A stretch of 54,305 nucleotides of DNA, filler included, from Sluysia triapertura (Eukaryota), in assembly GCA_046118255.1 (NCBI GenBank). It is 4 parts of 4 records of this genome, joined end to end, with 100 filler letters (N's around TTAATTAATTAA, not from the genome) between each part and the next. Parts side by side here need not be neighbours in the genome. Positions count along the whole stretch, not along the records: positions 40,500 to 54,305 come from JBJNIA010018964.1; 3 more parts are not named here. The stretch is one strand, 5' to 3'. The notes beneath the pieces were generated by a model that ran no database searches, had not been told where the DNA came from, and worked only from the letters and a program-made list of their open reading frames with translations. Shown here one piece after another: positions 311-54,305 of the stretch. The position numbers and the translations under genes were made by a program. The number at the start of each line of letters is the position of its first letter. The stretch's first letter is position 1.

Positions 311-950
311 ATCAGGAAGATTGTTTTGACAAAAAATATATGATTATGCTAAGAGTACAACAGAAGGTTAAAGATAACAATATTACACAAGAGACAGTAC
401 ACTAACGAATTTGGATCAATCACTACTAAATTATTTGGATTCGGGAATTGACACTTGATTTTCCATCATAAGTAAGATTATTTGTTAAGTTTTAGAACCT
501 TTTTTAAAGTTTTTAAACAATACAACAGGCTGAGAAAGGCGTCAGTGCGAAAAATGTAAAAGTGAATACCTATTCTAACAATAAAATCGACTCTACTATC
601 ATTTAGTTTTAATATCTTCAGAAAAGATTTACCAAATTATGGTCGCTTGAGACTGTCAATTAAATAAGGAAATTTTACGTATTAAATTGGCAATAGGTAT
701 TACAAACCCGGATTTAGTCGCACAATTAATATCATTAGATGAAGGAGTATCTGGTCGACTAACGGGAGAGATATTATACATATATAAGTGCAAAAAGGTA
801 AAAGTACAATTAAGGTCAACTACTGAATGCACAAATGAGTTACGAATACTATTTGGTAAAATAGAAACATCTCAAACCGGTAACCATCATATTTTTGAAT
901 TAATTCGCCTAAATTAAGAATGTAAAATTTAAATGCGTTTTCCATTAATA
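311..950 (+). pseudogene. Decayed chuvirus/herpes-gB-like (class III fusion) glycoprotein
   Basis: The frame of ORF 687-917, extended upstream, reads IYQIMVA*DCQLNKEILRIKLAIGITNPDLVAQLISLDEGVSGRLTGEILYIYKCKKVKVQLRSTTECTNEL. This fits the recalled chuviral G pattern LY..V...CE.ER..L...L.....P...A..L....G......GEV.....C..V.V..R....C..ELP. Upstream NVKVNTYSNNK and downstream C....P..F also fit. Stops and frameshifts are present. Confidence 0.7.
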
Positions 951-1267
951 TTTCTTTAATTGGTAAATCATGATCATATGAAATATGTATGTACTTGTTA
1001 CTTCTTTTCCTTTGCACGCTTGCTTGAAACCATTTAAATGGTGTTGAGTTTCCCAGGCGGATTTATATAATCCCAGTAAACATGTACATAACATCGTAAA
1101 GAAAAGCTGGAACTGTTTTAATATAATCATCGAAACAATAAATTATGCGATAAGTAACTTCTCTCTATTTTTATTTTTAACGGTATATGTTTCCTTTTTG
1201 ATAATTTTAGGAACATATGAAAAAGTCATAATGTGGAATATCAACAATATGAACTTTTCAATACTGT

Positions 1268-1363
1268 AGTATTGATGTTATAACGAGTTATTTGTATAAT
1301 AAATAATGATTGACATTATCAGCTGTATTTATTATACAAATAACTCGTTATAACATCAATACT
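1268..1363. repeat. Perfect 38-bp inverted repeat with 20-nt loop
   Basis: AGTATTGATGTTATAACGAGTTATTTGTATAATAAATA (1268-1305) is the exact reverse complement of 1326-1363. Confidence 0.95.
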
Positions 1364-1429
1364 CAAAAAAACAAGAGAATAAATAATAATAAGATAATTT
1401 AATAAGATAAATGATGATGATAAGAAATA

Positions 1430-1722
1430 ATAATGATAACAATAACGCAATTATTATGTTTTAAAATAATGGTATTGTAAATGTTAATATGAAAGTTATT
1501 ATGTGACAATCGTGGCAGTTATATCATATGAAAATAATTCTAATAATTTTAATATATTTTGATACGACTGGAGTTATAATAACAATAGCTATAGTTCATG
1601 ATAATTATGTACAATGGCTATGTTTGTTTTATGAATGAGTCCAGTAGTTTGTTTAATGTTTTATGTGTGTTTGAAATGTTTTTGTGTGATGAAGTGTGAT
1701 GAATTTTACATGATTCCCTACA
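1430..1722 (-). repeat. Dispersed repeat family A, probable RLE-clade LINE 3' UTR (copy 1)
   Basis: Aligns by eye to the reverse complement of 21803-22092 and to 16010-16143. Shared core AGTTCATGATAATTATGT at 1593, 16050 and (rc) 21911. An (AAT/GAT)-rich tail lies at 1380-1445. Confidence 0.8.
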
Positions 1723-1754
1723 ATATCCTATCACTTCAACGTCACCGCCACACG

Positions 1755-4370
1755 TAGTTTACACAATATGTGCAAACAATAACTACAGTGGCTCGAAAAG
1801 ATCCATGGTAGATATCACAATGAATGGTACTGGAGCCGTGGTTTTTTTGGTTAATGAAGTTTCTTAACTAAAGACGAATTAAAAAGTCTCACCCGTCACA
1901 CTTCTCATTTATCAGGAGTCACAAGAGATGCAATTAATATGGTTGGTATAATGAAGGCTATTTGTGAAGTAGGACAAAATAAATTAGAAATTAAGTTACG
2001 AGTCATGAAAGAATGTCCTGAAGAAATGATAATTGGAATGTACATATTATCACAATTAAAAGGAATCACTTTAGATTTCGCTCAAGCAAGATTGATGGAT
2101 AGTCGATCAAAAAGAGTTATTAGTGATGATGATGTGTACATAGATGAACCACTTTGGTTATTAAAAAGAAATGAATATATAATGCCAGCTAAAACAAATA
2201 GTCTGCTAACTTGCATTATTATGTTTATTGCATCAGTATTATGCTTATACAATACCTGCACATATTAATATGGTAATGAAAGACAAAAATAAGTTAGAAA
2301 ATAATATAAAATTACAACGCGAAATACAAGACGAGGATTATGGTGAAGTCTAAATCACTAATAAAAGCCTTAAAAGAAACAAATAGATCAGCTATACTAT
2401 GTTATTTATAGATAAGCAAGAGCAATACAAAAAATAAATATGATATTGGGAACTCAGTAATAATTAAATATGAAATACCATTGATAATAGACAAAATAAT
2501 TCGAAAAAAGCCATATGTAATCAAAAGGAGATGCAAGACCAAATATATAATGTGAAAAGGCCAGAATGATAAGACCACGTTTCTCTCCGTTTTCATCTCC
2601 AGTTTTTTAGTTAAAAAGAAGGATGGCGCAATGAGATAATGTATAGGGAATTAAATAAAATTAGCAAGAAAAGATGTATTCCCATTGACACGAATAGATG
2701 AAATGTTAGATAAATTAGGAAATGGGACATATTTTACAACTCTTGATCTATAAAGTGGTCATTGGCAGATAGAAATTGCCGAGAATGACAAACACAAAAT
2801 TGCATTTATATGAATTATATGAATGCGAGAAAATACTTTTGGATTGACTGGTGCACTTACAACTTTTCATCAGTGCATGGATTTCGTATTATCTGGTTGT
2901 AAAAATGTCATGGTATATATCGACGGCACAATAATATTCTCTAAAGATTTTGTAAAAGATACTGACAATATTTAAAATAGACTAGAAATAGCTAGATTAA
3001 AAATCAAACCTACCAATGTGTCTGGGCTGAGGAGAAAGTTGCATTTATAGGACATATAGTGTCGAAATATATAAAAGGTGGTTAAATTCCCACATCCAGA
3101 CAACGTAAAAATGATACAACGTTTTTTGGGTTTAGCTAATTACTGTAGAAGATTTGTTAAGAATTTGCTAAAATAGCATAACCATTTAGAAAACTGACAA
3201 GGAAAGATGGGCGGAGGAACAAACAAAAGCCTTCAAAGAATTAAAAGAACGGCTAACTACCATACCAATATTAATCTTTCCAGACGTAAATAAACATTCA
3301 TACTCACTAAGGATGCTAGAAATTATGCTATCGGAGCAATTTTGGGATAAGAATAACTTAGAAGCGGTAATTTCTTACGCTAGTCGACGTTTAAATAAAG
3401 CCGAAATGAATTACGTACGATAGAAATGGAGTGTTTAGAAATAGTGTATGCATGAAAATTGTTTAGACATTATCTATTGGGACAAAAAGTCTATTTATAT
3501 ACAGACCACAAACCATTGATGTATCTGCATAACCATAGGGATAAAGTTAGTAGATTAAATAGGTGGTTTAATAAACTATCAGAGTTTGACTTAGAAGTTA
3601 TGTATAAACCAGGTTCACAAAATAACGGCGCTGACTGTATGTCACGGTTGACAAATGTAGACGATAAAGGAAATATTAACTTTAAACAAATTATTCAATA
3701 TCGGGTAAGGTACACGATATTAAAGAAATTATCAGAAACCAAAGGGAAGATAAGGAAATTTCATCCATTATCGATTCATTGGCGAAAGAGACATTAATCG
3801 AAAATCAGGCAGAGATTAGTTATTACAGATGGAATTCTTCGATTCAGAAATTCAAAAGAAGATTGGAAAACAATAGTTCCCAAATCACTAATAACACCAA
3901 GTTTAATACAGTTTCATGATGGCACCTGTCTATGAGAAAAACACTATCAGGTATGAAAGACAAATATTGATAGGAGGATGTGAAAGAAGATATTAGAAAA
4001 TGGTGTAAAGATTGTTAAATCTGGTGTAGAAGAAAATCCACAGGAATAAAGAAAACAGTATCATTAAAACTTATGCCTGTACCATTATCACCAATGGAAT
4101 TTACAGCGATGGATATAATGGGGCCGATACCAGAAACATTACATGGAAATAAGTATATTATTGTATTTGCAGACTATCTAACTAAATGGCAGGAAGCTTT
4201 CCAATGCCAAATCAAAAGGCTGAAACAGTTGCACAGATACTTGTTGAGAATATAATTTACAGATGCGGTACACCACGAAAATCACTATCTTTATCGGAAA
4301 TGTTAAAAAATGATGCAACCCTGTTAATATTAATATTAGCTGCAATACTATTTATCATCGCTTAATCAAA
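1755..4370 (+). mobile_element. Degenerate Ty3/gypsy LTR retrotransposon pol (protease-RT-RNase H-integrase)
   Basis: Protease region (TGAVVF...GQNKLEIKLRV); RT (SPFSSPVFLVKKKDG, FPLTRIDEMLD, FTTLDL*SGHWQI, VYIDG); RNase H (DARNYAIGAIL, YASRRLNKAEMNY, YTDHKPL...YKPGSQNNGADCMSR); integrase (H...C..C, AMDIMGP...GNKYIIVFADYLTKW). Domain order is gypsy. Many stops and frameshifts. Confidence 0.93.
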
Positions 4371-40499: not shown

Positions 40500-41449
40500 A
40501 ATTAGAATATCAATCACACGAAACATGTAATTTACTGCGCCCCTGAATTGAAAAAAGAACCTTTGCGTTTATTCAATTCGAATTTTATAATTCCAATTAT
40601 GCAATAATCAATAGTTAATTAAAATATTTTAACTTCGAATGGTTAATTTATGGTGTACGATAAATTTGTAATTTAATAGAGTGTGATGCGACAATAATAG
40701 CAAAATACATCATTAGAATATAATTACCTAGAGAAAATAATTAACCAAGATTATTGATTAGTAAAATTGGTAGAATAAACTACTATATTCTACAAAAGTT
40801 TTTTATGTTTCAGAAATATTATAGTGAATGATTTGTTTTAAGCGTTTTTGAGTAGTTATTAGTGCAATATAAATTAATATATTATTATATAAAGTGTTTT
40901 TCACCGTAAAATTTATTTTAAACATTCATTGCAAAAATTTTCATACTCGTTGACAAATAGATTTTAAATATTCATTGAATTTATAAATATTCTTTTGGAT
41001 CGAGCATTTTGATAAAAGGGTCATTATTAGCATGATAACCCAAATGATACTTTAAAATTAATATAATATTGTAAAATTAATATAAACTTGCAAGTGGTTC
41101 GTTTTATTTTCGTCTAAATTATAGTTTGGTCACTCCATATTTCATAGTTTATATATTCTGTTTGGTATTAATAAATGAGTTTAAAATTTATTTTATTTAG
41201 ACATGTTTTAAGAAAAGATATCAGTTTAAGATTTTATATATAAAGCATTTTTTTAGAAAAATACACTTTCATCCTTTACAACGAAGGTAAGAACTCCAAT
41301 TTCCAGATAACACTTAATAAATACACTTAGATTGATTTTTAAGAAAAAAAGTTAGTAAACTAAAAAGATTCTAACAGACGAATAATTTATAACCCGATAA
41401 AGGATTGACAAATATTGTAATAAAATAAAAAATCAATAAAGGTACTTAC

Positions 41450-41624
41450 TCGAAGAAGATTTTGTAACCATCATTTAACCTAAATTGAAGAAAGAAACCC
41501 AAAAATGGTTTGCGACTGCTATCACCACCAGTCAGAATTTTATGAATAGTCATGAAGCAATTATATTTCATCGAATGTACAAATTTAATATCAGAAATAA
41601 TTTTTCGTTTTTCATCTTCAATAT
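41450..41624 (-). CDS. HUWE1: HUWE1 N-terminal-region exon
   Basis: ttcag acceptor and GTAAGT donor. KYNCFMTIHKILTGGDSSRKPFLGFFLQFRLNDGYKIFFE resembles [38 protein letters not shown]. Phase-compatible with the 44417 donor. Confidence 0.75.
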
Positions 41625-41660
41625 CTGAATTTATAAATTTATATTTTATAATTATGTGCG

Positions 41661-41721
<61 letters not shown>
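41661..41721 (+). repeat. (ATT)n microsatellite (intronic)
   Basis: Directly visible. Confidence 0.98.
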
Positions 41722-41725
<4 letters not shown>

Positions 41726-42157
41726 AATCATCTAAAATTTGGTCAATAATTAAAAAAGCGTGCAAGGTATGTAAATATTAATCCTTTCCCTCAACATTTC
41801 GCATTGACGAATGTGGTACACCTATTTTTAGTGATTTGAAAAAATTTAAATGGTAACATGATTAAGACCATAAGAAAGCTAATGTACAAACACTGATGTT
41901 CAATCATATCAATTTACTAGTTTGCTGAGACTAAAAATGGCTTCATTATTCCGATTTATAACTTGCGTGAAGAACATTTTTAGTGAAATATAATTTTATA
42001 ATATCAAATTTTGAAACAAAGCTTTGGTTCACCAAGGTTATTTTGACATTGTGTTTATAATTATTTCATATTTAATTACGTAGGGTTACTATTACTGGCA
42101 TCATTTTCTTTTGCTAAAACTTATAGAAATAAGAGTTTTTATTATAAACTTATCGAA

Positions 42158-42580
42158 ATGAAAACTTATCAGATAACGGATAATGAATCGAGGATAAGTG
42201 ATATGGAACCATGTGATAACGAAATTGAAAAAGAAGAGGAAGCCAGTGGAATTGAAGCCAGTAAAGATGTAGACTTCGTAATATCGAGATTTCTGATTCT
42301 GAAGGTGAAAATTAAATAGATCGTAACCGTAAAATGGTACTTTTCGAGAAACCATGAAAGAAGATAGATTACTACGCCTTATCACATTAAAAGATGGCTC
42401 AGGTCCAATTGGCTATACGACAAGGTTATTATGATCGGTTGAGTAAGTATTATGAAATAAATAAAATTATGTACAGAACTTGATACTCGTAAAATGTTGA
42501 GTAAGAAATTAACAGTTACAAAATCCCAATGATAGGCCTTTGTAACAATTTTGTCTTCCTGAAAAGTGCATAAAGCCAAA
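42158..42580 (+). mobile_element. Possible piggyBac transposase remnant in a HUWE1 intron
   Basis: Acidic N-terminus, ISDSE, NGT, then LKDGSGPIGYTTR (cf. GPT.YA.R) and a CNNFV remnant. A degenerate TTAATCCTTT end lies near 41778. Confidence 0.35.
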
Positions 42581-42890
42581 AAATTAATATGTTCATAATT
42601 TTAAAACCTACTTCGATACAAACGTTTTATCGGAAAATGAACGCGATCACAATTTAAAAATGCAGTACACAATTTATTAGATACTCAAAAAATAAAATAT
42701 AGATTACAATTGTAAGTGCTCAAGAATTCGTAAGTCACTTAATATAATATTCATCTGGCCATTGGCGATTTCTTATGTTAAGGTGCTTATTAATACAATA
42801 ATAAAAAATTAATATATAATAAACTATTTATAATAAATAAATAAAGTTTAATGGTTGAAATATCATAATTTATAATAAAGGTAATAATTT

Positions 42891-42903
42891 AATAATAATA
42901 ATG

Positions 42904-42960
<57 letters not shown>
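42891..42960 (+). repeat. (AAT)n microsatellite (intronic)
   Basis: Directly visible. Confidence 0.98.
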
Positions 42961-44416
42961 TCAATTGTTAGAAATACTTGGCACTTAAATAAAAGCACGA
43001 GATAAATAGTGAAAAATTCAAGTGAAATCGTGATAAACATAAGATTCTTAAACCGATATAAATTTGTAAAATATTGACGAAAACAAATTTAAAATGCATC
43101 GTTTGACAAAATTTAATAATCAGAGATTTGGTCGAAATAGAATAATCTTTTTGAAAATAGATTACAAAAAGTTCTTATCACGCAAGAAAAGTTTATAACA
43201 ATTTACTTAAATTATATTTAACGAAGATTTACTGAATCATAATTTGACAATCTTTATTTAAAAATAGAAATGCTTTGATTTTAAAAATACGAAATATTTT
43301 TTATCGTTTTTACGATCATAATTTAAGTTGAAATCATGATTATGTACAATTTTTTTTGTTTCTGATACATATTGTGCATTATTTTAAGTACTCCTTGTGA
43401 TTTAACCAAGTAATCGTCCAAATCATTAACGAGTTAATAATGTATTTCAAATCTTCGTTAATCACTCCCGAATAACGACCAAATCTTCAGTGATGAATTC
43501 ACCAAAAGCTCCAATAAGATTGTGTTAAATTCTTCTTTTTCATTACAAACTATCTCTTTATAATGTATTTTTAATGATATTTGATCAATAATTTTTTCAA
43601 TTTTATTCTATAATCAATTTTTCTCTATTAATTTCATTACATAGCCGATTTTATTCTATAATTAAATACATACACATTTAGTCTTATTCTATATTAAAAT
43701 TCATTTACATCTGCTTTGTTAATTCGTATTAATTTGTGAATGCTAATGTTTGTTTTTCATTTCTATTTTACAAGCATGACATTTTTGTATTCCTGTGATA
43801 TTTCTATACAATCTGTAGCATTTCCTTTTTGCTAATTAAATGTAGTAGATTCAATTCTTCATTATTATTCCACTTTCATTTTGTTTTCTTCTTTTAAGAA
43901 TTACTTTCCATTTTCCGATTTTAATCTATTCTTATAATTTATGTTTTATTTAATTTACATACAATTTAAATACATTTACTAAATAAATTTTAGTACAGAT
44001 TATTAAATTTTTATAATTTGCTACTAAGGTTATTTAGATTTAAACGCTAGAACTTTCAAAATTACGTATTACTAACAAAGAATTACTAACTTCAAATTTT
44101 ATTGTTTTTGCCGCTATAATTCATTTTACTTAAAAATTTCTAAATATCAAAATGTGTTATATTTATTCAGTTAAATTGTTTATAATAATTAGTTTACAAT
44201 TTATGTTAAAATAATTTATTTAAGAATTAGTTTTATTTAAGAATTTGGTTTTATTGATTTATCGTCCCATCTTATAATTTTATTTTTTCTTTTATTATTA
44301 TTCTTATAGTATTACTATTCTTATAATAATAATTATTATTTCTATTATTATATAATGTATAATACAATATATAATGCAAAATATAATACAATACAATATA
44401 GTATATATAATAATAC

Positions 44417-44662
44417 TAGTTTCAGTATATGGACTTTTCCATTTCAGTAATTCTCGACAATGATCAGCAATTATGTTTAGCATTTCAAATTTGTGACTAC
44501 CACTAGGAATATTCCCTTGTGCTCGATTATAGCGAACTCGAACGACATATGAATAGTCTGGTTTAACACAACAAAATTTAGTTAATGTTACCATAAGATC
44601 CACGAAATCTGTAGCAACTTTCTGGATTGTACAAAGCATTTTTTTAATGATCTTTTCACTTC
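44417..44662 (-). CDS. HUWE1: HUWE1 N-terminal-region exon
   Basis: tatag acceptor. KIIKKML...DLMVTLTKFCCVKP...LLKWKSPYTET resembles KQIKPLL...ELFGLLVKLCVGSP...GLSWQPPPYTPT. Phase 1 at both ends. Confidence 0.75.
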
Positions 44663-47636
44663 CTATAATTAAGTAAATAATATTTAAAATAGAAAACAAA
44701 AATTTCAATAACAATTGAAATGCTTTATATAACTCGTACATAAATAAAATTTTTTTTGTAAAACAATAAATTAATCAGTCAATAAGAATCCAAATTTCTA
44801 AAACCAATTAGAACCTTTTGAGTAATTTTTTTGAATTGTGTCTTTTGTTAAATGGCGTTGATTAATACTTAAAGTATGAGTTGTTTCCAGGTTTTTTGTA
44901 TACTTTCTATCTATTAATATGAACTCTTGATAACTTATACAACTGAATGCAACTTATGCAAAATACATATTAAATAGTTTAGAATAATTTTACTTAATTT
45001 AAAATACAATTAAAATAAAACTTAAATATCTTAGTAATCATGGTAAATTCAAAATAAAGTACACTTATTTAAGAAACAAATAGTGTAGCTCCATGAATGC
45101 AATTAGCAAGTAGCAAAAAAACAAACTATTTCAGTAAAATGAAAATGAAAATTTCAACATTACTGACGGACTAATACAAACCCACACATTACTACGTGAA
45201 TGTACATAAAAGAATAACTACATCATAAAATTAATTATTATAGAAAATTAATTAACATATAAGTAATGTAAATTTATTTTGTAAATATAAAAATAAAAAG
45301 TTATTGTTAATAGAAAATATTTTTTCTAGTCACTATAATAGAAAATAATTAGTGAACGATATTGTATGTATTAAAATAATTGTCAATAATATTAACATCA
45401 TTGTTAATAATGCAGAGCTATTCTCTTATTGGAAAATCATGAAATAGACATTAATAGAAAATTTATTTAAAAAATAATTAATACTTTTGAGTACTCTTTT
45501 AACTGGTAATGCAGTAGAAAATTATAAAAAATAATCATCATTAATAAAAATTTATTAAAAAATAATTAATAGAACAAGAATATAAAGCAAACTACAATTG
45601 TTATGACAAAATAACTAAGCTAAATACCTAAAAGTAATAACATAATCGGAACAATATTTTGGATATAAAAATAATAATGCAGAGACTATTGAAACAAAAA
45701 AGTATAAATAGGCATCACAGTTTATTGAAGGTATTTTTAGAATATTTGATCACAGTTTATTGAAGAAACATTTCACTGCAATTTGTCCAAGAAGGAATAC
45801 ATAAAACATAATTTTTAATAAAAACTTTTGCTAAATCTAGATTTTCTAAACATAATTTGGTAATATTTTAATTCTCCTATTACGAATATTGAGATCAATT
45901 AATTTATTACTTCGAATTTGGAGTCTTGATTGTTCAATAAATTCAAATTTCCCTAAAAGTGTTATGCCTTGAAGGTTGATACATAACTAAAAATTAAATA
46001 AATAAATGATAACTGATAATGGCGATCGTGAGGACTTGTGTAACAAAAAGCATAATATTAACATATTTGGTTATTATAATTTGATATAGTTATGTTGATT
46101 TCATTATAAGATTTTGAAGTTTTATAATTCACGAATTGTGTTGAGTACAAAGAATTAATATTGTCTAACGTTTATTTGATATAATATAATTTTGTGTTTT
46201 AGCGGTTAATGACTTAAATATATTTTATTGTAAGATTTTTGTATTGGGTATACTGAAATAGCGATATGTAGAAAATGTTTTACATGTAAATTATGTAGGA
46301 CTTGAATTATGACTTTGCATGAACTTACGCATGAGTGACGTGATTAGTGTGTGATTCAAACACCACAACGATAATACATATATAAAATCATTTACATGAT
46401 TTTAACTACAGTAAAGCTACTTCAGATTGGAATTCAAAAAATTATTGGCCATGATATATAATAGAGTGGAACTTTCCACATTAAAAATAATTTTTTGTTG
46501 GCTTTTAAACTAAATTTAAAAATTTAGAATTAATTTTGATTATAAAGATATTTTGGTTACGTTCTAGAAGTTTCTTGGCTATATGTACAAGAAATACTCT
46601 GGTTATATTTTGGTTTCAAATATAATTTTGATACTTTACGAACTTATTGACAACTTCTTAGGCATATATTACGCGAGTCCTTTATTGGTGAATAGTGATT
46701 TAGTAAGTACAGGATCTAAATTTATATTGTTAATATATCTTAAATTACATGTGGTCCCTTTTATTACACTGTACATTTATGTTTTGTTACTAAATACATC
46801 TTATTGGATTAAAGATTTAATTTATTTTGAATATAGAAATTTGAAGAAATTTTATTGATTTGTACTAGTCTCTACCATCCCAGAGAAGTTCAGATGATCT
46901 CCGCCATAGAAAGACTAATTATAAATTCATATAATATAAGTATTATCCATCATAATTTCAAGTTTAAAATTCAATTCACATTTAAATATTACAAGACTAG
47001 TAAAGTTGTGGAATAATGTGAGGCGCAATCACCAGTAGATTTAAATTTACTACCTACCATTCGAATAACAAAGCGGGTAAATTTTTATTACAAATTTGGA
47101 AATCAAAATCAAGTTTAAAAAGATATTTATTACATAGTTAATACACAAAATAAAATAAAATTGATACGAGATAATATTAACCCATGTAAACTCTCACTAT
47201 TTTTGTTTTATCCAAAACGTTAGTATAATTAAAATGATTTCGTACTCTGAAGACAATTCCAAAAATGTAATAATAGTTTGTTATGGATTAATATTAGTCT
47301 AAGTAGTATTATGAATATTTATGTCGCTACCTTAGATTGGAATTACATAAGAAAAGTTCTATTATACACGTACTATATATTTTGCTATCAATTAATTATT
47401 TTCAGCATTCAAGATCTAACGTAAGAATAGAATCAAGAGTTCTAAAAATGGTTAAGCCATAATCCAAGGCAAACTAAATAAAATTTTAAACCATTTTATG
47501 TAAGAGAATTCTTAACTTCTACAATACTCAATACTTGAACAAAAGTAGTTCTACCTAAAGTATAAATCATATATTTATACATCTTATATTTCATGTACGT
47601 ATAAATGTGATTTTAGCTAAATATTTTAAAACTTAC

Positions 47637-47842
47637 GTGGATTATCGTTAAATAACTGTTGGCATGATGATATAGAATCTAATTTATTATCTGTAAATGT
47701 ATCATCTCCGCTTACATCCATTACAACACTGTTCCTTTCATATAAACATAACCGTTTCAAATCTTCCAAACATGCTTCTTCATTTTCAAACAACAAATTC
47801 ATTAAAACCATCCCATCCCAATGGAAAAGAGGTAATAAATTT
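47637..47842 (-). CDS. HUWE1: HUWE1 N-terminal-region exon
   Basis: ttttag acceptor and GTAAGT donor. FHWDGMVLMNL...EDLKRL resembles LVWESTVLLSL...ADMQKL. Confidence 0.75.
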
Positions 47843-48829
47843 CTAAAATAAAATAAAATCCAAAATATTCCCAAAAATCTATGAAAAGTTTTTGGTAACG
47901 AATTTTGTACAATAATCATATAATTATTTTATTATAATTTCAGTTTAAAATGTTTTCAACTCAATAAACAAAAACTTCCTCAATTTGAATTCAAGAAATA
48001 ATGTTAAGATATTTTACAATTGTGAAGCTCCATTTGTTTTTATTCTTGTACATTTGTAGTGGTTCTAAACCAGACTCGTAATTTTGTTACATGAACTAAC
48101 ACACTCCAATTATATTATCTTATATTATTTTGACACATCAAATGAAATATATTTAATGTATCGCCTTTGTCACAGCATTTGTACTTTAGTGACACAACTA
48201 ATTAGTTGATAAATCTCAGCCTTTGTGAACCAATTTTATTGAAATCGATTTGGATCTATCGTCGATATATAGTATCTACTAAATGTTATTTTATCTGTTT
48301 TGCGAACTGTTTTATATAAACACGTTTTTCATGCATTTTATGCTATCTTCCAAATTCCATCTTAAAAGTGCAAAAAACGTTCCGCCTGTTCTTATTATAA
48401 ATTAATATTTACTATATATTAAATACATTCAGGTACGCATTAAAATGTGTGTTTCTGTTCAAAACCACTTAAACAATTGAAATATAAAAACAAATAGAAA
48501 ACATCGTTTATTTACAAAATGGAATTGTGTTAATGTTAATGTTAAAAAATAGGAGAATGAGACAACAAAATGCAATTAAATGCTACATATACAATAGAAT
48601 GACGAATTTATAGGAATGGGCAAAAAAAATTTAGAGTAAATTCGGTATGTAATGAGATGCAGCATAACTGATCCTTTTAAAATATGCATACTAATTGAAA
48701 ACATACAAATAAGTTTTTGAAATTATAAAAGGTTAAAAATATTTCATTTTTATATTAGAAAGCTAGATTTAGAAAACTAGAGTTTAATATCATTTTAATA
48801 ATTTTATTAAACATTAATAATCAACTAAC

Positions 48830-49103
48830 GCATGTTTAATAGGACCATTGAGTAAAATTTCTAATAAACTTTGCCTTAGATTACCTGGTAAACGGTCAGT
48901 TATTTTATCATAAATCGATACAATACTCGATAAGATAACTAAATCATGTAAATAACATACTCCATTAATTAGCCATAACTTTTTCTTCAAAACAGTTTGA
49001 TGTCGAGGATCACTACTGATTAGACGTAATGGAATATTAAGTTCCATAGGTTTGAAAGAATTATAGTAACTTTCATTCCGTGTTACATAACCTTTTAAAA
49101 ACA
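48830..49103 (-). CDS. HUWE1: HUWE1 N-terminal-region exon (boundaries tentative)
   Basis: Within ORF 48814-49104. YLHDLVILSSIVSIY..R...LRQ resembles LLHALTAAHAYIMMF..R..EIRS. ttcag acceptor and GTTAGT donor keep the frame. Confidence 0.6.
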
Positions 49104-49198
49104 CTGAATAAAATTGAGGCTAAACGCAAGATAAGCGTTTCGTTATAAAAAAATCTGTTTGTGAAATAATTTATAAAAAAGTCTTGTTTCAGATTCAC

Positions 49199-49538
49199 TA
49201 GCAAAACTTAACAAATATTCGAATATTTTCTGCAAGGAGAAACATGCGGCTGAAGTCAGAAAATCGTAAGGCAAAGCCGGTAGAGTAAATACTTCTAATA
49301 AAAGAGAAAAACCTAATTTTGAATATATTTGTGATTTTAAGTTTGCTTCCGGATTTTGTTCAAATATAAAGCGTTCAAAAAATTTACAAACGTTACATAA
49401 ATAATCCATGAAGTAAATTTCATCTTGTTCAGTTATTTCAGTACCTGGTTCATTCGCAACATATGTTGAATCTAATAAATGTATAGAAAATACATTTAAC
49501 AACTTCTGTGTTTCTAAATCTACATCCAAAATTTCATT
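49199..49538 (-). CDS. HUWE1: HUWE1 N-terminal (armadillo-like/DUF913-adjacent) sequence fused in frame behind the HECT domain
   Basis: [13 protein letters not shown]...[23 protein letters not shown] matches the recalled LMDYILNVMKFVE...KGL.[21 protein letters not shown] of the HUWE1 N-terminus. Confidence 0.85.
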
Positions 49539-49871
49539 GTGAGCTGCTGGTAATTGGTTTGTGCTAGTCGATGCTTGACTTATTTGAAATTTTGTAGGAC
49601 CATTCATTCCTTCTAATTTAGAAAACCCTCCAAAAGGTACTTTACTTGTACCTGTGACAAACTGAATGAAACACGCTCGATCTTCTGATTCAAATGATTC
49701 TAATGCTTGCCAGAACCATTTTATCTGATCTGAATTAGCATGATAGCGAGTATAAACAGTGTTAGCTTTTAAATCTGCTAAATCTATATCTGGAAGTCCG
49801 CAAATTAACAGTTCTAGCTCCTTTTCATTAAAGATTGATATTAATGACTTCGGTATTATTTCATAGAATCC
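49539..49871 (-). CDS. HUWE1: HUWE1 HECT C-lobe, truncated just before the catalytic Cys
   Basis: [27 protein letters not shown]...IKWFW...[29 protein letters not shown]......NQLPAAH; no TCFN follows. Confidence 0.95.
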
Positions 49872-50070
49872 CTTAATAATTATTTTTAATAATACATTTT
49901 CAAATTCTGTGAATAAGAATCACATTATAAATTGCGCATCAATATCACAAATCTAGAAATTTTACTTTAGACGAAATAAATTAAAATAAATTAACAAATC
50001 TCTTATTTTTCCTTGAAATACATTTTAAATTAAAATAAGAATAAACTATAAAAGTAATTTTTCTTCACAC

Positions 50071-50295
50071 CTGCAAGAAACTAGCGAGCTGTTGTCGGAT
50101 AGCTCCGGTCATTTTCTGTTGACATACCAATCGTACATAATCTCGCTTATTTTCTTCTGTTACTAGTATCTTGGAACCATCTGGAAGAAGTTCTCTAGTT
50201 TCCGATCGGCCAAATTCATTTATCTGTATAGTAAACGTTTGATCTGACAAAGCAAACATTGAAGAAACGTCATTGTTTAATAAAAATTCCAAACC
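50071..50295 (-). CDS. HUWE1: HUWE1 HECT exon
   Basis: AG/GT bounded, phase 0; [11 protein letters not shown]...NEFG...[42 protein letters not shown]. Confidence 0.95.
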
Positions 50296-50903
50296 CTGTA
50301 CAAATAAACAATTTATAATTATATGAAACTTTATACATTAATAACATTTCATTTTAGTTTTCTCATTATATAAATTTAACACAAATTATAATTACTTATA
50401 CTCAAAAATAAGAATTGATTAATGTACTTTAGAAATTCAGAGAATATAATATATTATGTTTCTATTAAGTTGTTCGATAGAAAACTATCAAATTTAGAAC
50501 ATATAAAAAGATGAAACTAAAATGCATTTATTTAAATAATATTCATCTGACTCTAAATATTGTTCTTATTGTGTGATTTACTTAATTGTCACTAATTCAT
50601 AGAAACCAGATTTGAAATTAAGTCTAATCTAATAGTAGTTATGGATCGAAGACATTATATTATATTAGGGATTTTCTCATTTTTGTAATAAGCTTTCGTT
50701 TAGGAATTATATCATAATTCAATTTGAAATATAACTAAATTACATATAATGCAAAAATTAAATTGTATGTCATGTTAATAATAATAAAAATAATATATTA
50801 AATTTGAACTAAGGTCTTAATGATTTTGTAATTTATGAATTAAACATTTAAACGTCTTCAAACGTTTGATTTTAATAATTCAAGGTTGGTAATATAACTA
50901 AAC

Positions 50904-51119
50904 CTGAAAAAATTGATAATCTTCTTTCTCTAAGTCTGTATATCGTATTGGTAAACCTAAGATATGTTTATAGATGGCTCTAGTAAAATAACACTGAAGC
51001 AATTTCTGATCAAAAATAGCTTTTGCTATAAAACGACCAACGAATTTGAAATAGCTTAGATGATTACTGTTGATATATGATGACGGATTGATTGTGTATG
51101 TAACTCCATCAGGGGATAC
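50904..51119 (-). CDS. HUWE1: HUWE1 HECT exon
   Basis: AG/GT bounded, phase 0; [55 protein letters not shown]...[11 protein letters not shown]. Confidence 0.95.
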
Positions 51120-51824
51120 CTGAAAAAAGATTAAAATTTAATTAATTGTAACTTATTGATAATTATTTATTAATTATTGTCGATAATGTTTCGGATTTAT
51201 TTTACGTTAAGGCAGAAACAATTATTTCTTCAACTATTCAAATTTTTAAAAAACAAAGCTTATTATTAAAAATTATTGTCACTGATTCATACAAGTACAT
51301 TATTCAAATGGGTAAATTACTAATAAAATTCAGGCACAACAACTGTGAAACCTATAGACAATTTATTTAATTCTGTAAAATTTAAAATATTATTTTAATT
51401 TCTATAAAAATAAGTTGTTTCTGAAGAATAACGCAATTCATTCATTATACATATTTAATATTAAATCATTAGTTTAATATCGATCATCAATGAAACTAAT
51501 ATTTTCATGTTGAGATTATTTTTCGATATAAATGCATTTGCGCAACACATTTTTCTATCATCAAAAACATTAATGTAATACGAAGATCTATCATTGTGTT
51601 TTCTTAATAACATCAGTAATATTGAAGAACAAAGAACTTGATAATACTTTTGCATTATTCAAGACAAAATTCTAGATTTATAGCAACTTTTTTTAGCTGC
51701 ACGTACAGGATGAGTGTAAAGTCATTGTCGGTTTAAAAATGTGTATTTATCTAAACCATTAGTATGTATTATGAAAATTTTTTGCAAACAATAATTGAAT
51801 TTGATGTTTGATTTAAATGTACTA

Positions 51825-52052
51825 CAGTGGATCCCCGCATAACGTGATAATAAAATTTCGACAAACGAGCAAATTTAGCCCCTGTAAAGCGTTAATGAAA
51901 CTTTTAATTTTATTATTATTCACAGCGAGTTCGACATCTATCGTTACCATTCTTTTAACGCGATAGTTCCCTACCGCCTTATGTAGGAGTCCCCATGTAA
52001 CACGAATTCCAATACGCAGTACTTAATTATTGTGTTACGCGGGAATCTACTG
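51825..52052. mobile_element. 228-bp Tc1/mariner-pogo-type MITE in a HUWE1 intron
   Basis: TA target duplication on both sides. TIRs CAGTGGATCCCCGCATAAC and (rc) CAGTAGATTCCCGCGTAAC are 16/19 identical. Confidence 0.85.
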
Positions 52053-52972
52053 TATCTATAAAATTTTTATGAAACTTATTGTCAATGAACGATAAAATTA
52101 ATATTTTTAAAATTAATTTTAAAAAATAGCAGGGAGAAAATCAAAACCCAACCATTTCATGAAATAAATATGTTTTTAAAATTTGAAGAAACTAGATGCT
52201 TACGAAATAGAAAAAGTCGAAGAACATCTATCAGTGACACTCATGTTAATCAAGCAAAGCAACACTTTGAATGATATTTACGTTTTTAAGATGAGCGTCA
52301 GTTGATTTAGAAATAGGGCATTCAAAACTAACGGAAAACTTAAAATATAAAATTGTAATGAAGATATTTATACTGAAGGGCACTTCTTATTGACATTTTA
52401 AATATATTTTAAGCATAACTTAAGTATTCGATTATTGTATTCCACGTACGTATGTGTGTATCGGATGTTTACCAATTTCTGGCGAGAATTAATGATAAGT
52501 AACGTCTATAATGCGGAAATTATAATAAAAGAAATTTATTGATCATTTATAAATTCATAAATTTTTTGATCATTTACTATTTATATATTTAAAATGAATA
52601 TTTTCAACACCTTGCATTAGCAGTTAAGTAATATATCATGTAGAGGTGTCAAAAAATTTGTTTGCAACTTTTAAATTGCTGTTTAAACTTAGTCAAAAAT
52701 GTAATGTTTTGAAAAGAAAACTAATGAAAACATTAAATTAATTACGGTGTAAACTAATGACATTGAAACATTTATGATTGAATTGATACTATAAATAAGA
52801 GCCACTTTTGGAAAAGTTATGTAGTAAAAATGAAAACAAAATAAAAAATAACAATTCATAAAATATGTTTTGTTATGTGATTGATAGAAAATAAATCCAG
52901 CTTGATTAATAATTAAATGGTATACTGTATAATTATTTTATGGATATTAAAAAATTATTTAAAATATCTAAC

Positions 52973-53968
52973 CTGAAATAACACATAATTTGGATTAAAT
53001 ATTTCTTGACTCATTTTTAAGTACCATTCGCGAAGTAAACCACCACCATCTTGACCTTCTTCGTTATTAAACTTGATCGAAAATCTTTGTTTCCATTCAT
53101 CTGGTGTTTTACGATGTAGGCGTCCGTAGCTGTCTTCAAATAACCTTGTTCTAGATACTTGAATCAATTCTTCATCGTAACGATTATCAACTTCTTGGCG
53201 TAACTGGGCTAATTTAGCTTGGAAATAACGTCGCTTTATATCAAAATCAAGTAAAGACGGGTTGTGAAGAACGCAGCGCCATATGTGTGAATTATCAAGT
53301 ATTGATTGAATCGATGAAGCACGGTTTCGCAATATCATGTTAATAACATTTCTATGTGTATGTGTAAAGTGAAATAAAGCCGTTTTAGGATCTGTAATAT
53401 CTGTAAAAGAAGTGTGAACATTGGATGGCAATGAACCAGTGCGTAATGAATATTGATTTGAAGAATTAAATTTATAAGTTACACACTGTGAAGACATTGA
53501 AGAAGAGGGCGGTGATGAAGGTAACATGAATATATCTGGGTCTTGATCATCGTACTCGATATGAGATACAGTCGATTGAATATTGGGTGTTACAGATGAA
53601 TTTTGCGGTATCGGAGTAGTATCAACATTTGGTTCCTGAACTGCACCACTAACTTGTTGATTGGAACGAATTTTTTCATTGTCTTCGGTATTGTGGCACA
53701 ATAAAAATGCTTCTACTAAGCTTTGTAACAAAAGTACGAGATCAGATTCAGGATTAGTTTGTTTTAAATTAGTAAGAGCATCACTGAGTAAATTCCAGAA
53801 TGGTAATGCTGTTGGACGATTAGCTCGAAAACACTCCAAGTAGGAAGGACCACTTATTTTGTACAAAAGCATTAAGAAATCTATCAAATTTCCGTGATCT
53901 GTCCAATTTAAATCAGTGAAACAACGCAAACTCGGAATTGAACTAGGAACGCGACTAACCAAATGAAG
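52973..53968 (-). CDS. HUWE1: HUWE1 pre-HECT and HECT N-lobe exon
   Basis: FWNLLSDAL...LLLQSLVEAFLLCH, F..THRNVINMILR, LLDFDIKRRYF, VSR..LFEDSY, F..EEGQDGGGLLREWY..MS.EIFNPNY.LF; bounded by ttcag and GTTAGA. Confidence 0.96.
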
Positions 53969-54305
53969 CTGAAATTGTTATTTTTATAATCATATACTAA
54001 AGATGATATTGTAATGTTATTTGTAATTTTTATGCATAAAATTGTATTTTGAAATTCATTATCATATCGATTGAGTTTAAATTCAAAAATTATGAACAAT
54101 CCTTAAAGCCAATGGATCCTATTTAGGACAAATAAAACTATTATTTCGTATCTTAATCATTTCATCAATATAAATAAAGAAATTAAAATGGCATTAAGTT
54201 TTTCTGATACATTAAAGGTTACAACAGTAGCCAAAATACAAACATCTGGGGATAAAAAATCACTTGACAAGAATAGAACGATTACTTAAAGTTAACGGGT
54301 AATAC

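Follow-up and report, generated by a model that had tools for sequence, protein, structure and literature searches.

An in-frame joint from the HECT domain to the N-terminal region of a HUWE1-type gene in Sluysia triapertura, a candidate head-to-tail intragenic duplication

How can a HUWE1-type ubiquitin ligase gene, in which the N-terminal solenoid comes first and the HECT domain stands at the extreme C-terminus, come to be found in a permuted order? The question is raised by a stretch of 54,305 nucleotides (nt), filler included, from Sluysia triapertura (assembly GCA_046118255.1), to which we refer as the window and whose coordinates are used throughout. The gene in question lies on the piece at positions 40500-54305 (13.8 kb; JBJNIA010018964.1), which is AT-rich eukaryotic DNA with a GC content of 18-36% and carries one gene, on the minus strand. 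A preliminary description, made from the sequence alone, had read it as a permuted HUWE1, in which the HECT domain is cut just before its catalytic cysteine and fused in frame to the N-terminal exons of the same gene.

The joint itself is contained in a single stop-to-stop open reading frame (ORF; 49919..49146, minus strand, 258 residues), which holds GFYEIIP...NQLPAAH followed, unbroken, by NEILDVD..., and both the Pfam HECT and the Pfam DUF913 profiles match within it, so that this central observation of the preliminary description was confirmed. The His codon occupies 49541-49539 and the codon after the cut starts at 49538 (GCT CAC A/AT GAA); at the switch there is no stop, frame shift or splice signal. 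The order of a HUWE1-type protein is thereby permuted, the HECT domain preceding the end of DUF913 within one ORF, and this permuted order is certain within the contig. Where an active HECT domain carries the (H)TCF cysteine and a C-terminal tail, the frame here reads ...LPAAH/NEILD, i.e. the domain is cut immediately before Thr-Cys, as had been proposed. Read in all its frames, the coding strand of the piece contains none of the motifs TCF, FNxLDLP and GFGF, and thus the catalytic Cys and the C-terminal tail are missing, not merely displaced. Small hidden introns near the joint were tried as well and give no TCFN reading. A search for repeats over 40500-52050 found neither direct nor inverted repeats at the junction.

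The joint lies in the fourth of eight exons, which are given here in the order in which they are read (a slash marks a splice boundary):

52973..53968, minus strand: exon A, pre-HECT region and start of the HECT N-lobe; an ORF of 332 codons, phase 0 to 0
acceptor cag/ and donor /gttaga, minus strand: ends of exon A, from splice-site reading
50904..51119, minus strand: exon B, HECT N-lobe, 72 codons; Pfam HECT positions 21-88, E 6e-12; GT-AG
50071..50295, minus strand: exon C, HECT N-lobe, 75 codons; Pfam HECT positions 104-164, E 1.4e-12; GT-AG
49539..49871, minus strand: HECT part of the junction exon (exon D), end of the N-lobe and C-lobe to ...LPAAH; Pfam HECT
49472..49538, minus strand: unattributed 67-nt stretch directly after the cut, 22 codons in frame; open frame
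49199..49471, minus strand: HUWE1 N-terminal exon sequence with the end of DUF913, in the frame of the HECT domain; Pfam and BLASTP
49104..49198, minus strand: 95-nt intron, phase 1, donor A/gtgaat, acceptor ttattcag/
48830..49103, minus strand: exon E, collinear HUWE1 N-terminal exon, from its match to Dicrocoelium HUWE1
47637..47842, minus strand: exon F, probable next HUWE1 exon; weak collinear match, GT-AG, correct phase
44417..44662, minus strand: exon G, putative; open frame in the needed phase, GT-AG
41450..41624, minus strand: exon H, putative; open frame in the needed phase, GT-AG

Homology searches were run exon by exon, and the joined eight-exon model was checked for phases and split codons. 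All exons have an AG acceptor and a GT donor and consistent phases, as listed in the preliminary description; their combined length is 3011 nt, and none of the four split codons (ATG, GCA, CGA and AAT) is a stop. For exons G and H the exon-wise searches detected no homology, so that both rest on their ORFs and splice sites; the region that would hold them is poorly conserved across the HUWE1 family.

Do the two halves of this frame belong to the same gene? Among 1.84 billion representatives, the 242-residue junction ORF matched full-length HUWE1/Tom1/UPL proteins, with two separate matched stretches in 69 of 150 proteins among the matches listed. Among these matches the closest full-length relatives are HUWE1 of the trematode Dicrocoelium dendriticum and of the cestode Sparganum proliferum, and a partial HECT ligase of the cestode Rodentolepis nana (1268 residues) is similarly close. 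Both halves share the trematode HUWE1 as their best full-length relative, and we used this protein (CAH8630885.1, 4372 residues; P0122) as the reference. In tblastn the HECT exons align to its residues 3800-4337: exon A to 3800-4080 (E 9e-39, 36% identity, the pre-HECT region being less conserved), and exons B, C and D at 58-72% identity, with exon B 72% identical to residues 4077-4152 and the HECT part of the junction exon 70% identical to residues 4220-4337. This last part (49871-49539) covers positions 165-272 of the 306 of the Pfam HECT profile (E 4e-35) and stops without Thr-Cys and the final ~35 residues.

Beyond the cut, the frame does enter the N-terminal region of HUWE1. In BLASTP the post-junction residues 42-109 match Dicrocoelium HUWE1 at residues 531-599 (E 7e-12), and about 30 other HUWE1/Tom1/UPL homologues match the DUF913-end block at their own residues ~550-1050 with a domain E of at most 0.001. 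The segment 49538-49146 matches positions 328-382 of the 382 of the Pfam DUF913 profile (E 1.5e-5, exactly at the gathering score), so that only the last ~55 profile positions are present. The exons that follow are collinear, as had been suggested: residues 57-85 of the exon E ORF correspond to Dicrocoelium residues 649-677 (E 2.5e-4, 48% identity) and exon F, weakly, to 699-720 (E 0.38). We also mapped the exons of the Dicrocoelium gene, which spans 98 kb and has introns near residue 612 and at 691/692. The former corresponds to the 95-nt intron at 49198-49104, which had originally been assumed and is now upheld by its GT-AG ends and its position, and the latter matches the 3' end of exon E. 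Since two intron positions are common to Dicrocoelium, the post-junction part is a genomic copy, neither a cDNA nor a chance ORF. Judged by its predicted domains, the gene is thus a member of the HUWE1/Tom1/UPL1 family, with both a HUWE1-type HECT domain and an N-terminal armadillo-like region that includes the end of DUF913. Its best relatives, the introns in common with them and the FQISxAS...LPxAH signature indicate Platyhelminthes, or a closely related group, with a very AT-rich genome.

Where, then, does the break lie? Related flatworm ORFs in Logan and NCBI contigs end ...LP(S/C)AHTW..., with the DNA reading GCxCAYACxTG/GTATGT or /GTAAGT. Indeed, flatworm HUWE1 genes have a phase-2 intron inside the catalytic Cys codon (AHT-TG/GT), which is common to Dicrocoelium, where the exon ends at residue 4338. 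Because the exons of the relatives end at AHT-TG/GT, the left cut lies 4-5 nt short of the ancestral donor, which has been lost. On the right the position is less sharp. HUWE1 homology resumes only ~31-42 residues after the cut, at a place where other species have a variable, acidic and presumably disordered loop. The 67 nt directly after the cut have an intron-like GC content of 22%, compared with 30-36% in the exons, and they end in ...catttattag/, a plausible native acceptor; their codon score of 2.8 falls between that of exon windows (mean 6.3) and that of stop-free intron windows (mean -4.6). Two readings of the 33 post-cut residues were rejected. As a degenerate HECT tail they score -1.7 bits against a hidden Markov model (HMM) of 200 HECT tails, with 1438 of 2000 shuffles equal or better, and as the DELxRHxPxLK helix of DUF913 the NEIL... 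segment scores -1.5 bits, a value that 1124 of 2000 shuffles reach or exceed. Because the tail HMM score is no better than that of shuffles, the BLAST and tblastn HECT matches that run 24-30 residues past AAH are spurious. Since the 33 residues match neither the HECT tail nor the upstream HUWE1 helix, the right breakpoint is only bounded, to about 49538-49440, and would fall either inside the N-terminal exon or within the 67 nt that close the intron before it. Of the earlier claim of a switch at this point without a splice site, the absence of a splice site thus held, whereas the exact right-hand breakpoint is less firmly placed. An RNA-mediated origin (retrocopy or back-splice) was rejected, as the junction exon has introns on both sides and the cut falls 4-5 nt short of the exon end.

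The tail exon was also sought at two other flatworm HUWE1 loci, L001 (3261-3300) and L003 (1270-1300), but the contig downstream (3.4 kb and 4.8 kb, respectively) showed no motif of it; the last intron there is therefore probably longer than 3.4 and 4.8 kb. In Dicrocoelium (L009, 98024-98560) the last intron is shorter than ~0.7 kb.

Apart from its missing end, the HECT domain is well preserved. There are 114 alignment columns in which HUWE1-type homologues show at least 95% conservation; the HECT part is unchanged in 108, and of the six differences one (H to S in FQIS) recurs in other flatworms, in agreement with the earlier impression of little decay. This undecayed state fits a working HECT domain that ends elsewhere (and hence an artefact), a copy made recently or one kept under constraint, and argues against an old unconstrained relic. 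A HECT domain without its Cys and tail cannot form the ubiquitin thioester, as established HECT biochemistry holds; the copy at the joint is thus predicted to be catalytically dead, with the N-lobe surface that would bind the ubiquitin-conjugating enzyme (E2) complete.

What event could have brought these two points together? The junction of a head-to-tail duplication is the simplest origin of the permuted arrangement, and to this extent the original interpretation stands; for its further suggestions, a giant ring-forming ubiquitin ligase (E3) with a dead HECT domain inside it, an E2-binding decoy and a reintegrated circle, we obtained no evidence, the open frame being all that speaks for the first two. 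We tentatively favour, with a confidence that stays somewhat below even, the view that the contig carries the joint of a head-to-tail intragenic HUWE1 duplication and that this structural variant, germline or somatic, was already in the DNA that was sampled. The frame passes from residue ~4337 to residue ~531 on one strand, as a joint of the duplication type does, and the joined points would lie ~80 kb apart at their Dicrocoelium equivalents or ~50 kb apart by the exon density here. A join within one gene, on one strand and over what are probably tens of kb is the signature of a single tandem duplication. The intact HECT domain, with its 108 of 114 conserved columns, likewise fits a recent copy of a working gene.

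In such a duplication the contig would hold the joint between the end of one segment and the start of the next, with the left breakpoint 4-5 nt short of the donor site that ends the penultimate HECT exon and the right one within ~100 nt upstream of the conserved end-of-DUF913 block. In the transcript, a HECT domain without its Cys and tail would lead in frame straight back into the armadillo solenoid, and, if the duplication is a simple tandem, a second complete HECT domain beyond the piece would supply the activity after a second solenoid. The contig itself establishes the arrangement, the homology of the two halves, the conserved intron positions and the unbroken frame; the presence of the joint in the animal, a tandem form of the duplication and its transcription are inferences, and for the first of these we consider the chances about even. 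It is unlikely that the joint is at once real, fixed and expressed, in which case it would give either a HUWE1 of about double length (solenoid, Cys-less E2-docking HECT, second solenoid, active HECT) or a dead-HECT paralogue kept as a regulator. The variant is expected to be neutral or mildly harmful, not an adapted new enzyme.

Several observations weigh against a duplication in the animal, and they lead to the rival explanation that deserves most attention, namely that the joint is an artefact and that the HUWE1 of the animal is canonical only. The join could have arisen in a chimeric molecule, by template switching in whole-genome amplification, by circularisation or ligation in vitro or as a chimeric long read, or through a misjoin by the assembler, and we regard this as a serious possibility that is nonetheless less than even. 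The piece is short, about one long read, and comes from an assembly in short pieces, where chimeric molecules tend to survive. A single sequencing run (X1, 736 Mb, 2024, contigs) contains the stretch, with only 85% of the words sampled from 48817-50295, and this run may be the source sample. Protein-collection searches and metagenome scans yielded no independent contig across 49538/49539: three homologous-protein searches (junction ORF, HECT part and N-terminal part) found nothing above 74% identity, and two exact-pattern scans of metagenome contigs gave no match. Every relative examined has a canonical HUWE1 with AHT-C and a tail exon, and a HECT domain that is fully conserved apart from its missing end is what one working copy would show; intactness is equally expected if a single normal HECT domain lies in a chimeric contig. 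An exonic or near-exonic joint that is also in frame has an a priori chance of ~1-2% for any random join, real or artificial, and the frame may only reflect selection by what drew attention to the locus.

The properties of known chimeras bear on both sides of this question. Multiple displacement amplification (MDA) can generate as many as about one chimera in every 10 kb (PMC11660948), and the chimeras made by phi29 polymerase resemble the present case in that two non-adjacent parts of one chromosome region are joined in one molecule (PMC4595205; see also PMC1855051). They are, however, mostly inverted, with parts 0-5000 nt apart (peak 250-300 nt) and an overlap of 5-8 nt (PMC4595205), whereas the joint here is direct and, by the Dicrocoelium gene and the local exon density, probably spans tens of kb. 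Amplification may, moreover, not have been used on the source DNA, and the joint offers no repeat common to both sides that could have misled an assembler. Random ligation rarely gives the same gene, strand and frame, and chimeras of that kind almost never stay within one gene, which suggests a real joint. Two further explanations have a small share of the probability. A retained HUWE1-derived gene, i.e. a paralogue or partial copy in which a dead HECT domain and a solenoid act beside the canonical HUWE1 as a decoy or regulator binding E2 or substrate, would account for ~1000 codons that are open over eight exons with good splice sites and for the conserved HECT residues. We consider it improbable: neither age nor selection has any support, the conserved residues could as well stem from a recent origin or an artefact, neither exon G nor exon H is backed by homology, and no RNA run was found to contain the stretch. 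An extrachromosomal circle excised from HUWE1 (the equivalent of residues ~530-4337), sequenced across its closure point and possibly enriched by rolling-circle amplification, would yield exactly such an end-to-start joint on one strand. It would have to measure ~50-80 kb, by the intron density here and the Dicrocoelium gene, and nothing supports circularity; we hold it to be very improbable.

How does a head-to-tail duplication of this kind compare with known proteins and mutations? Relative to the canonical HUWE1/Tom1/UPL1 architecture, as in Dicrocoelium, the gene shares the HECT N-lobe and most of the C-lobe (70% identity), the DUF913-end block (40%) and the flatworm-type FQISxAS...LPxAH signature. 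In Dicrocoelium the penultimate exon ends at about AHT-C; here the order is permuted, residue ~4337 being followed by ~531, and the piece has neither the catalytic Cys nor the LDLPxY motif nor the C-terminal tail. In-frame partial tandem duplications (PTDs) inside genes are familiar from KMT2A-PTD in leukaemia and from exon duplications in DMD. The present case is like these in the head-to-tail repeat of an internal segment and in a new joint that is in frame; their breakpoints usually fall in introns, with splicing to join the parts, whereas here at least the left break is exonic and the frame would run through the DNA joint itself, provided that the joint is present in the genome. A second point of comparison is P0121, a predicted NEDD4-like protein of 566 residues, in which a first HECT copy stops before LPRSHTCFN and is followed by a second copy of the HECT N-lobe. 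It differs in belonging to another HECT subfamily and in repeating only the HECT domain, and it is known as a prediction only. Its segment of ~280 residues, repeated head to tail, is an independent public example, as a prediction, of a like permuted HECT joint.

Two further features lie in the introns of the piece. Between exons A and B, at 51823-52054 (minus strand), there is an element of 228 bp with imperfect terminal inverted repeats of 21 nt (TACAGTAGATTCCCGCGTAAC and the reverse complement of GTTATGCGGGGATCCACTGTA), of which 18 of 21 positions match; it is flanked on both sides by TA, has no ORF of its own and looks like a Tc1/mariner-type miniature inverted-repeat transposable element (MITE). 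In the intron between exons G and H, (ATT)n and (TAA)n microsatellites at 41661-41731 and 42890-42965 form inverted arms ~1.16 kb apart. The segment between them reaches a GC content of 30% with a positive GC skew and contains a minus-strand ORF of 103 codons (42412-42104) without a Pfam or HUWE1 match.

In summary, if the joint is an artefact, it warns that short contigs in fragmented or low-input invertebrate assemblies can mimic rearrangements with perfect frames. If it is real, it is a known kind of mutation, the in-frame partial head-to-tail duplication, in an unusual gene, and the doubled HUWE1 would probably be tolerated or do slight harm and not be an improved enzyme. HUWE1 closes into a ring with the HECT domain on top (e.g. 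PMC8476073). A true joint would be a natural in-frame internal duplication in an E3 ligase that ranks among the largest and most constrained, and it would provide a natural test both of what the HUWE1 ring tolerates and of the role of a Cys-less HECT domain inside a ligase.

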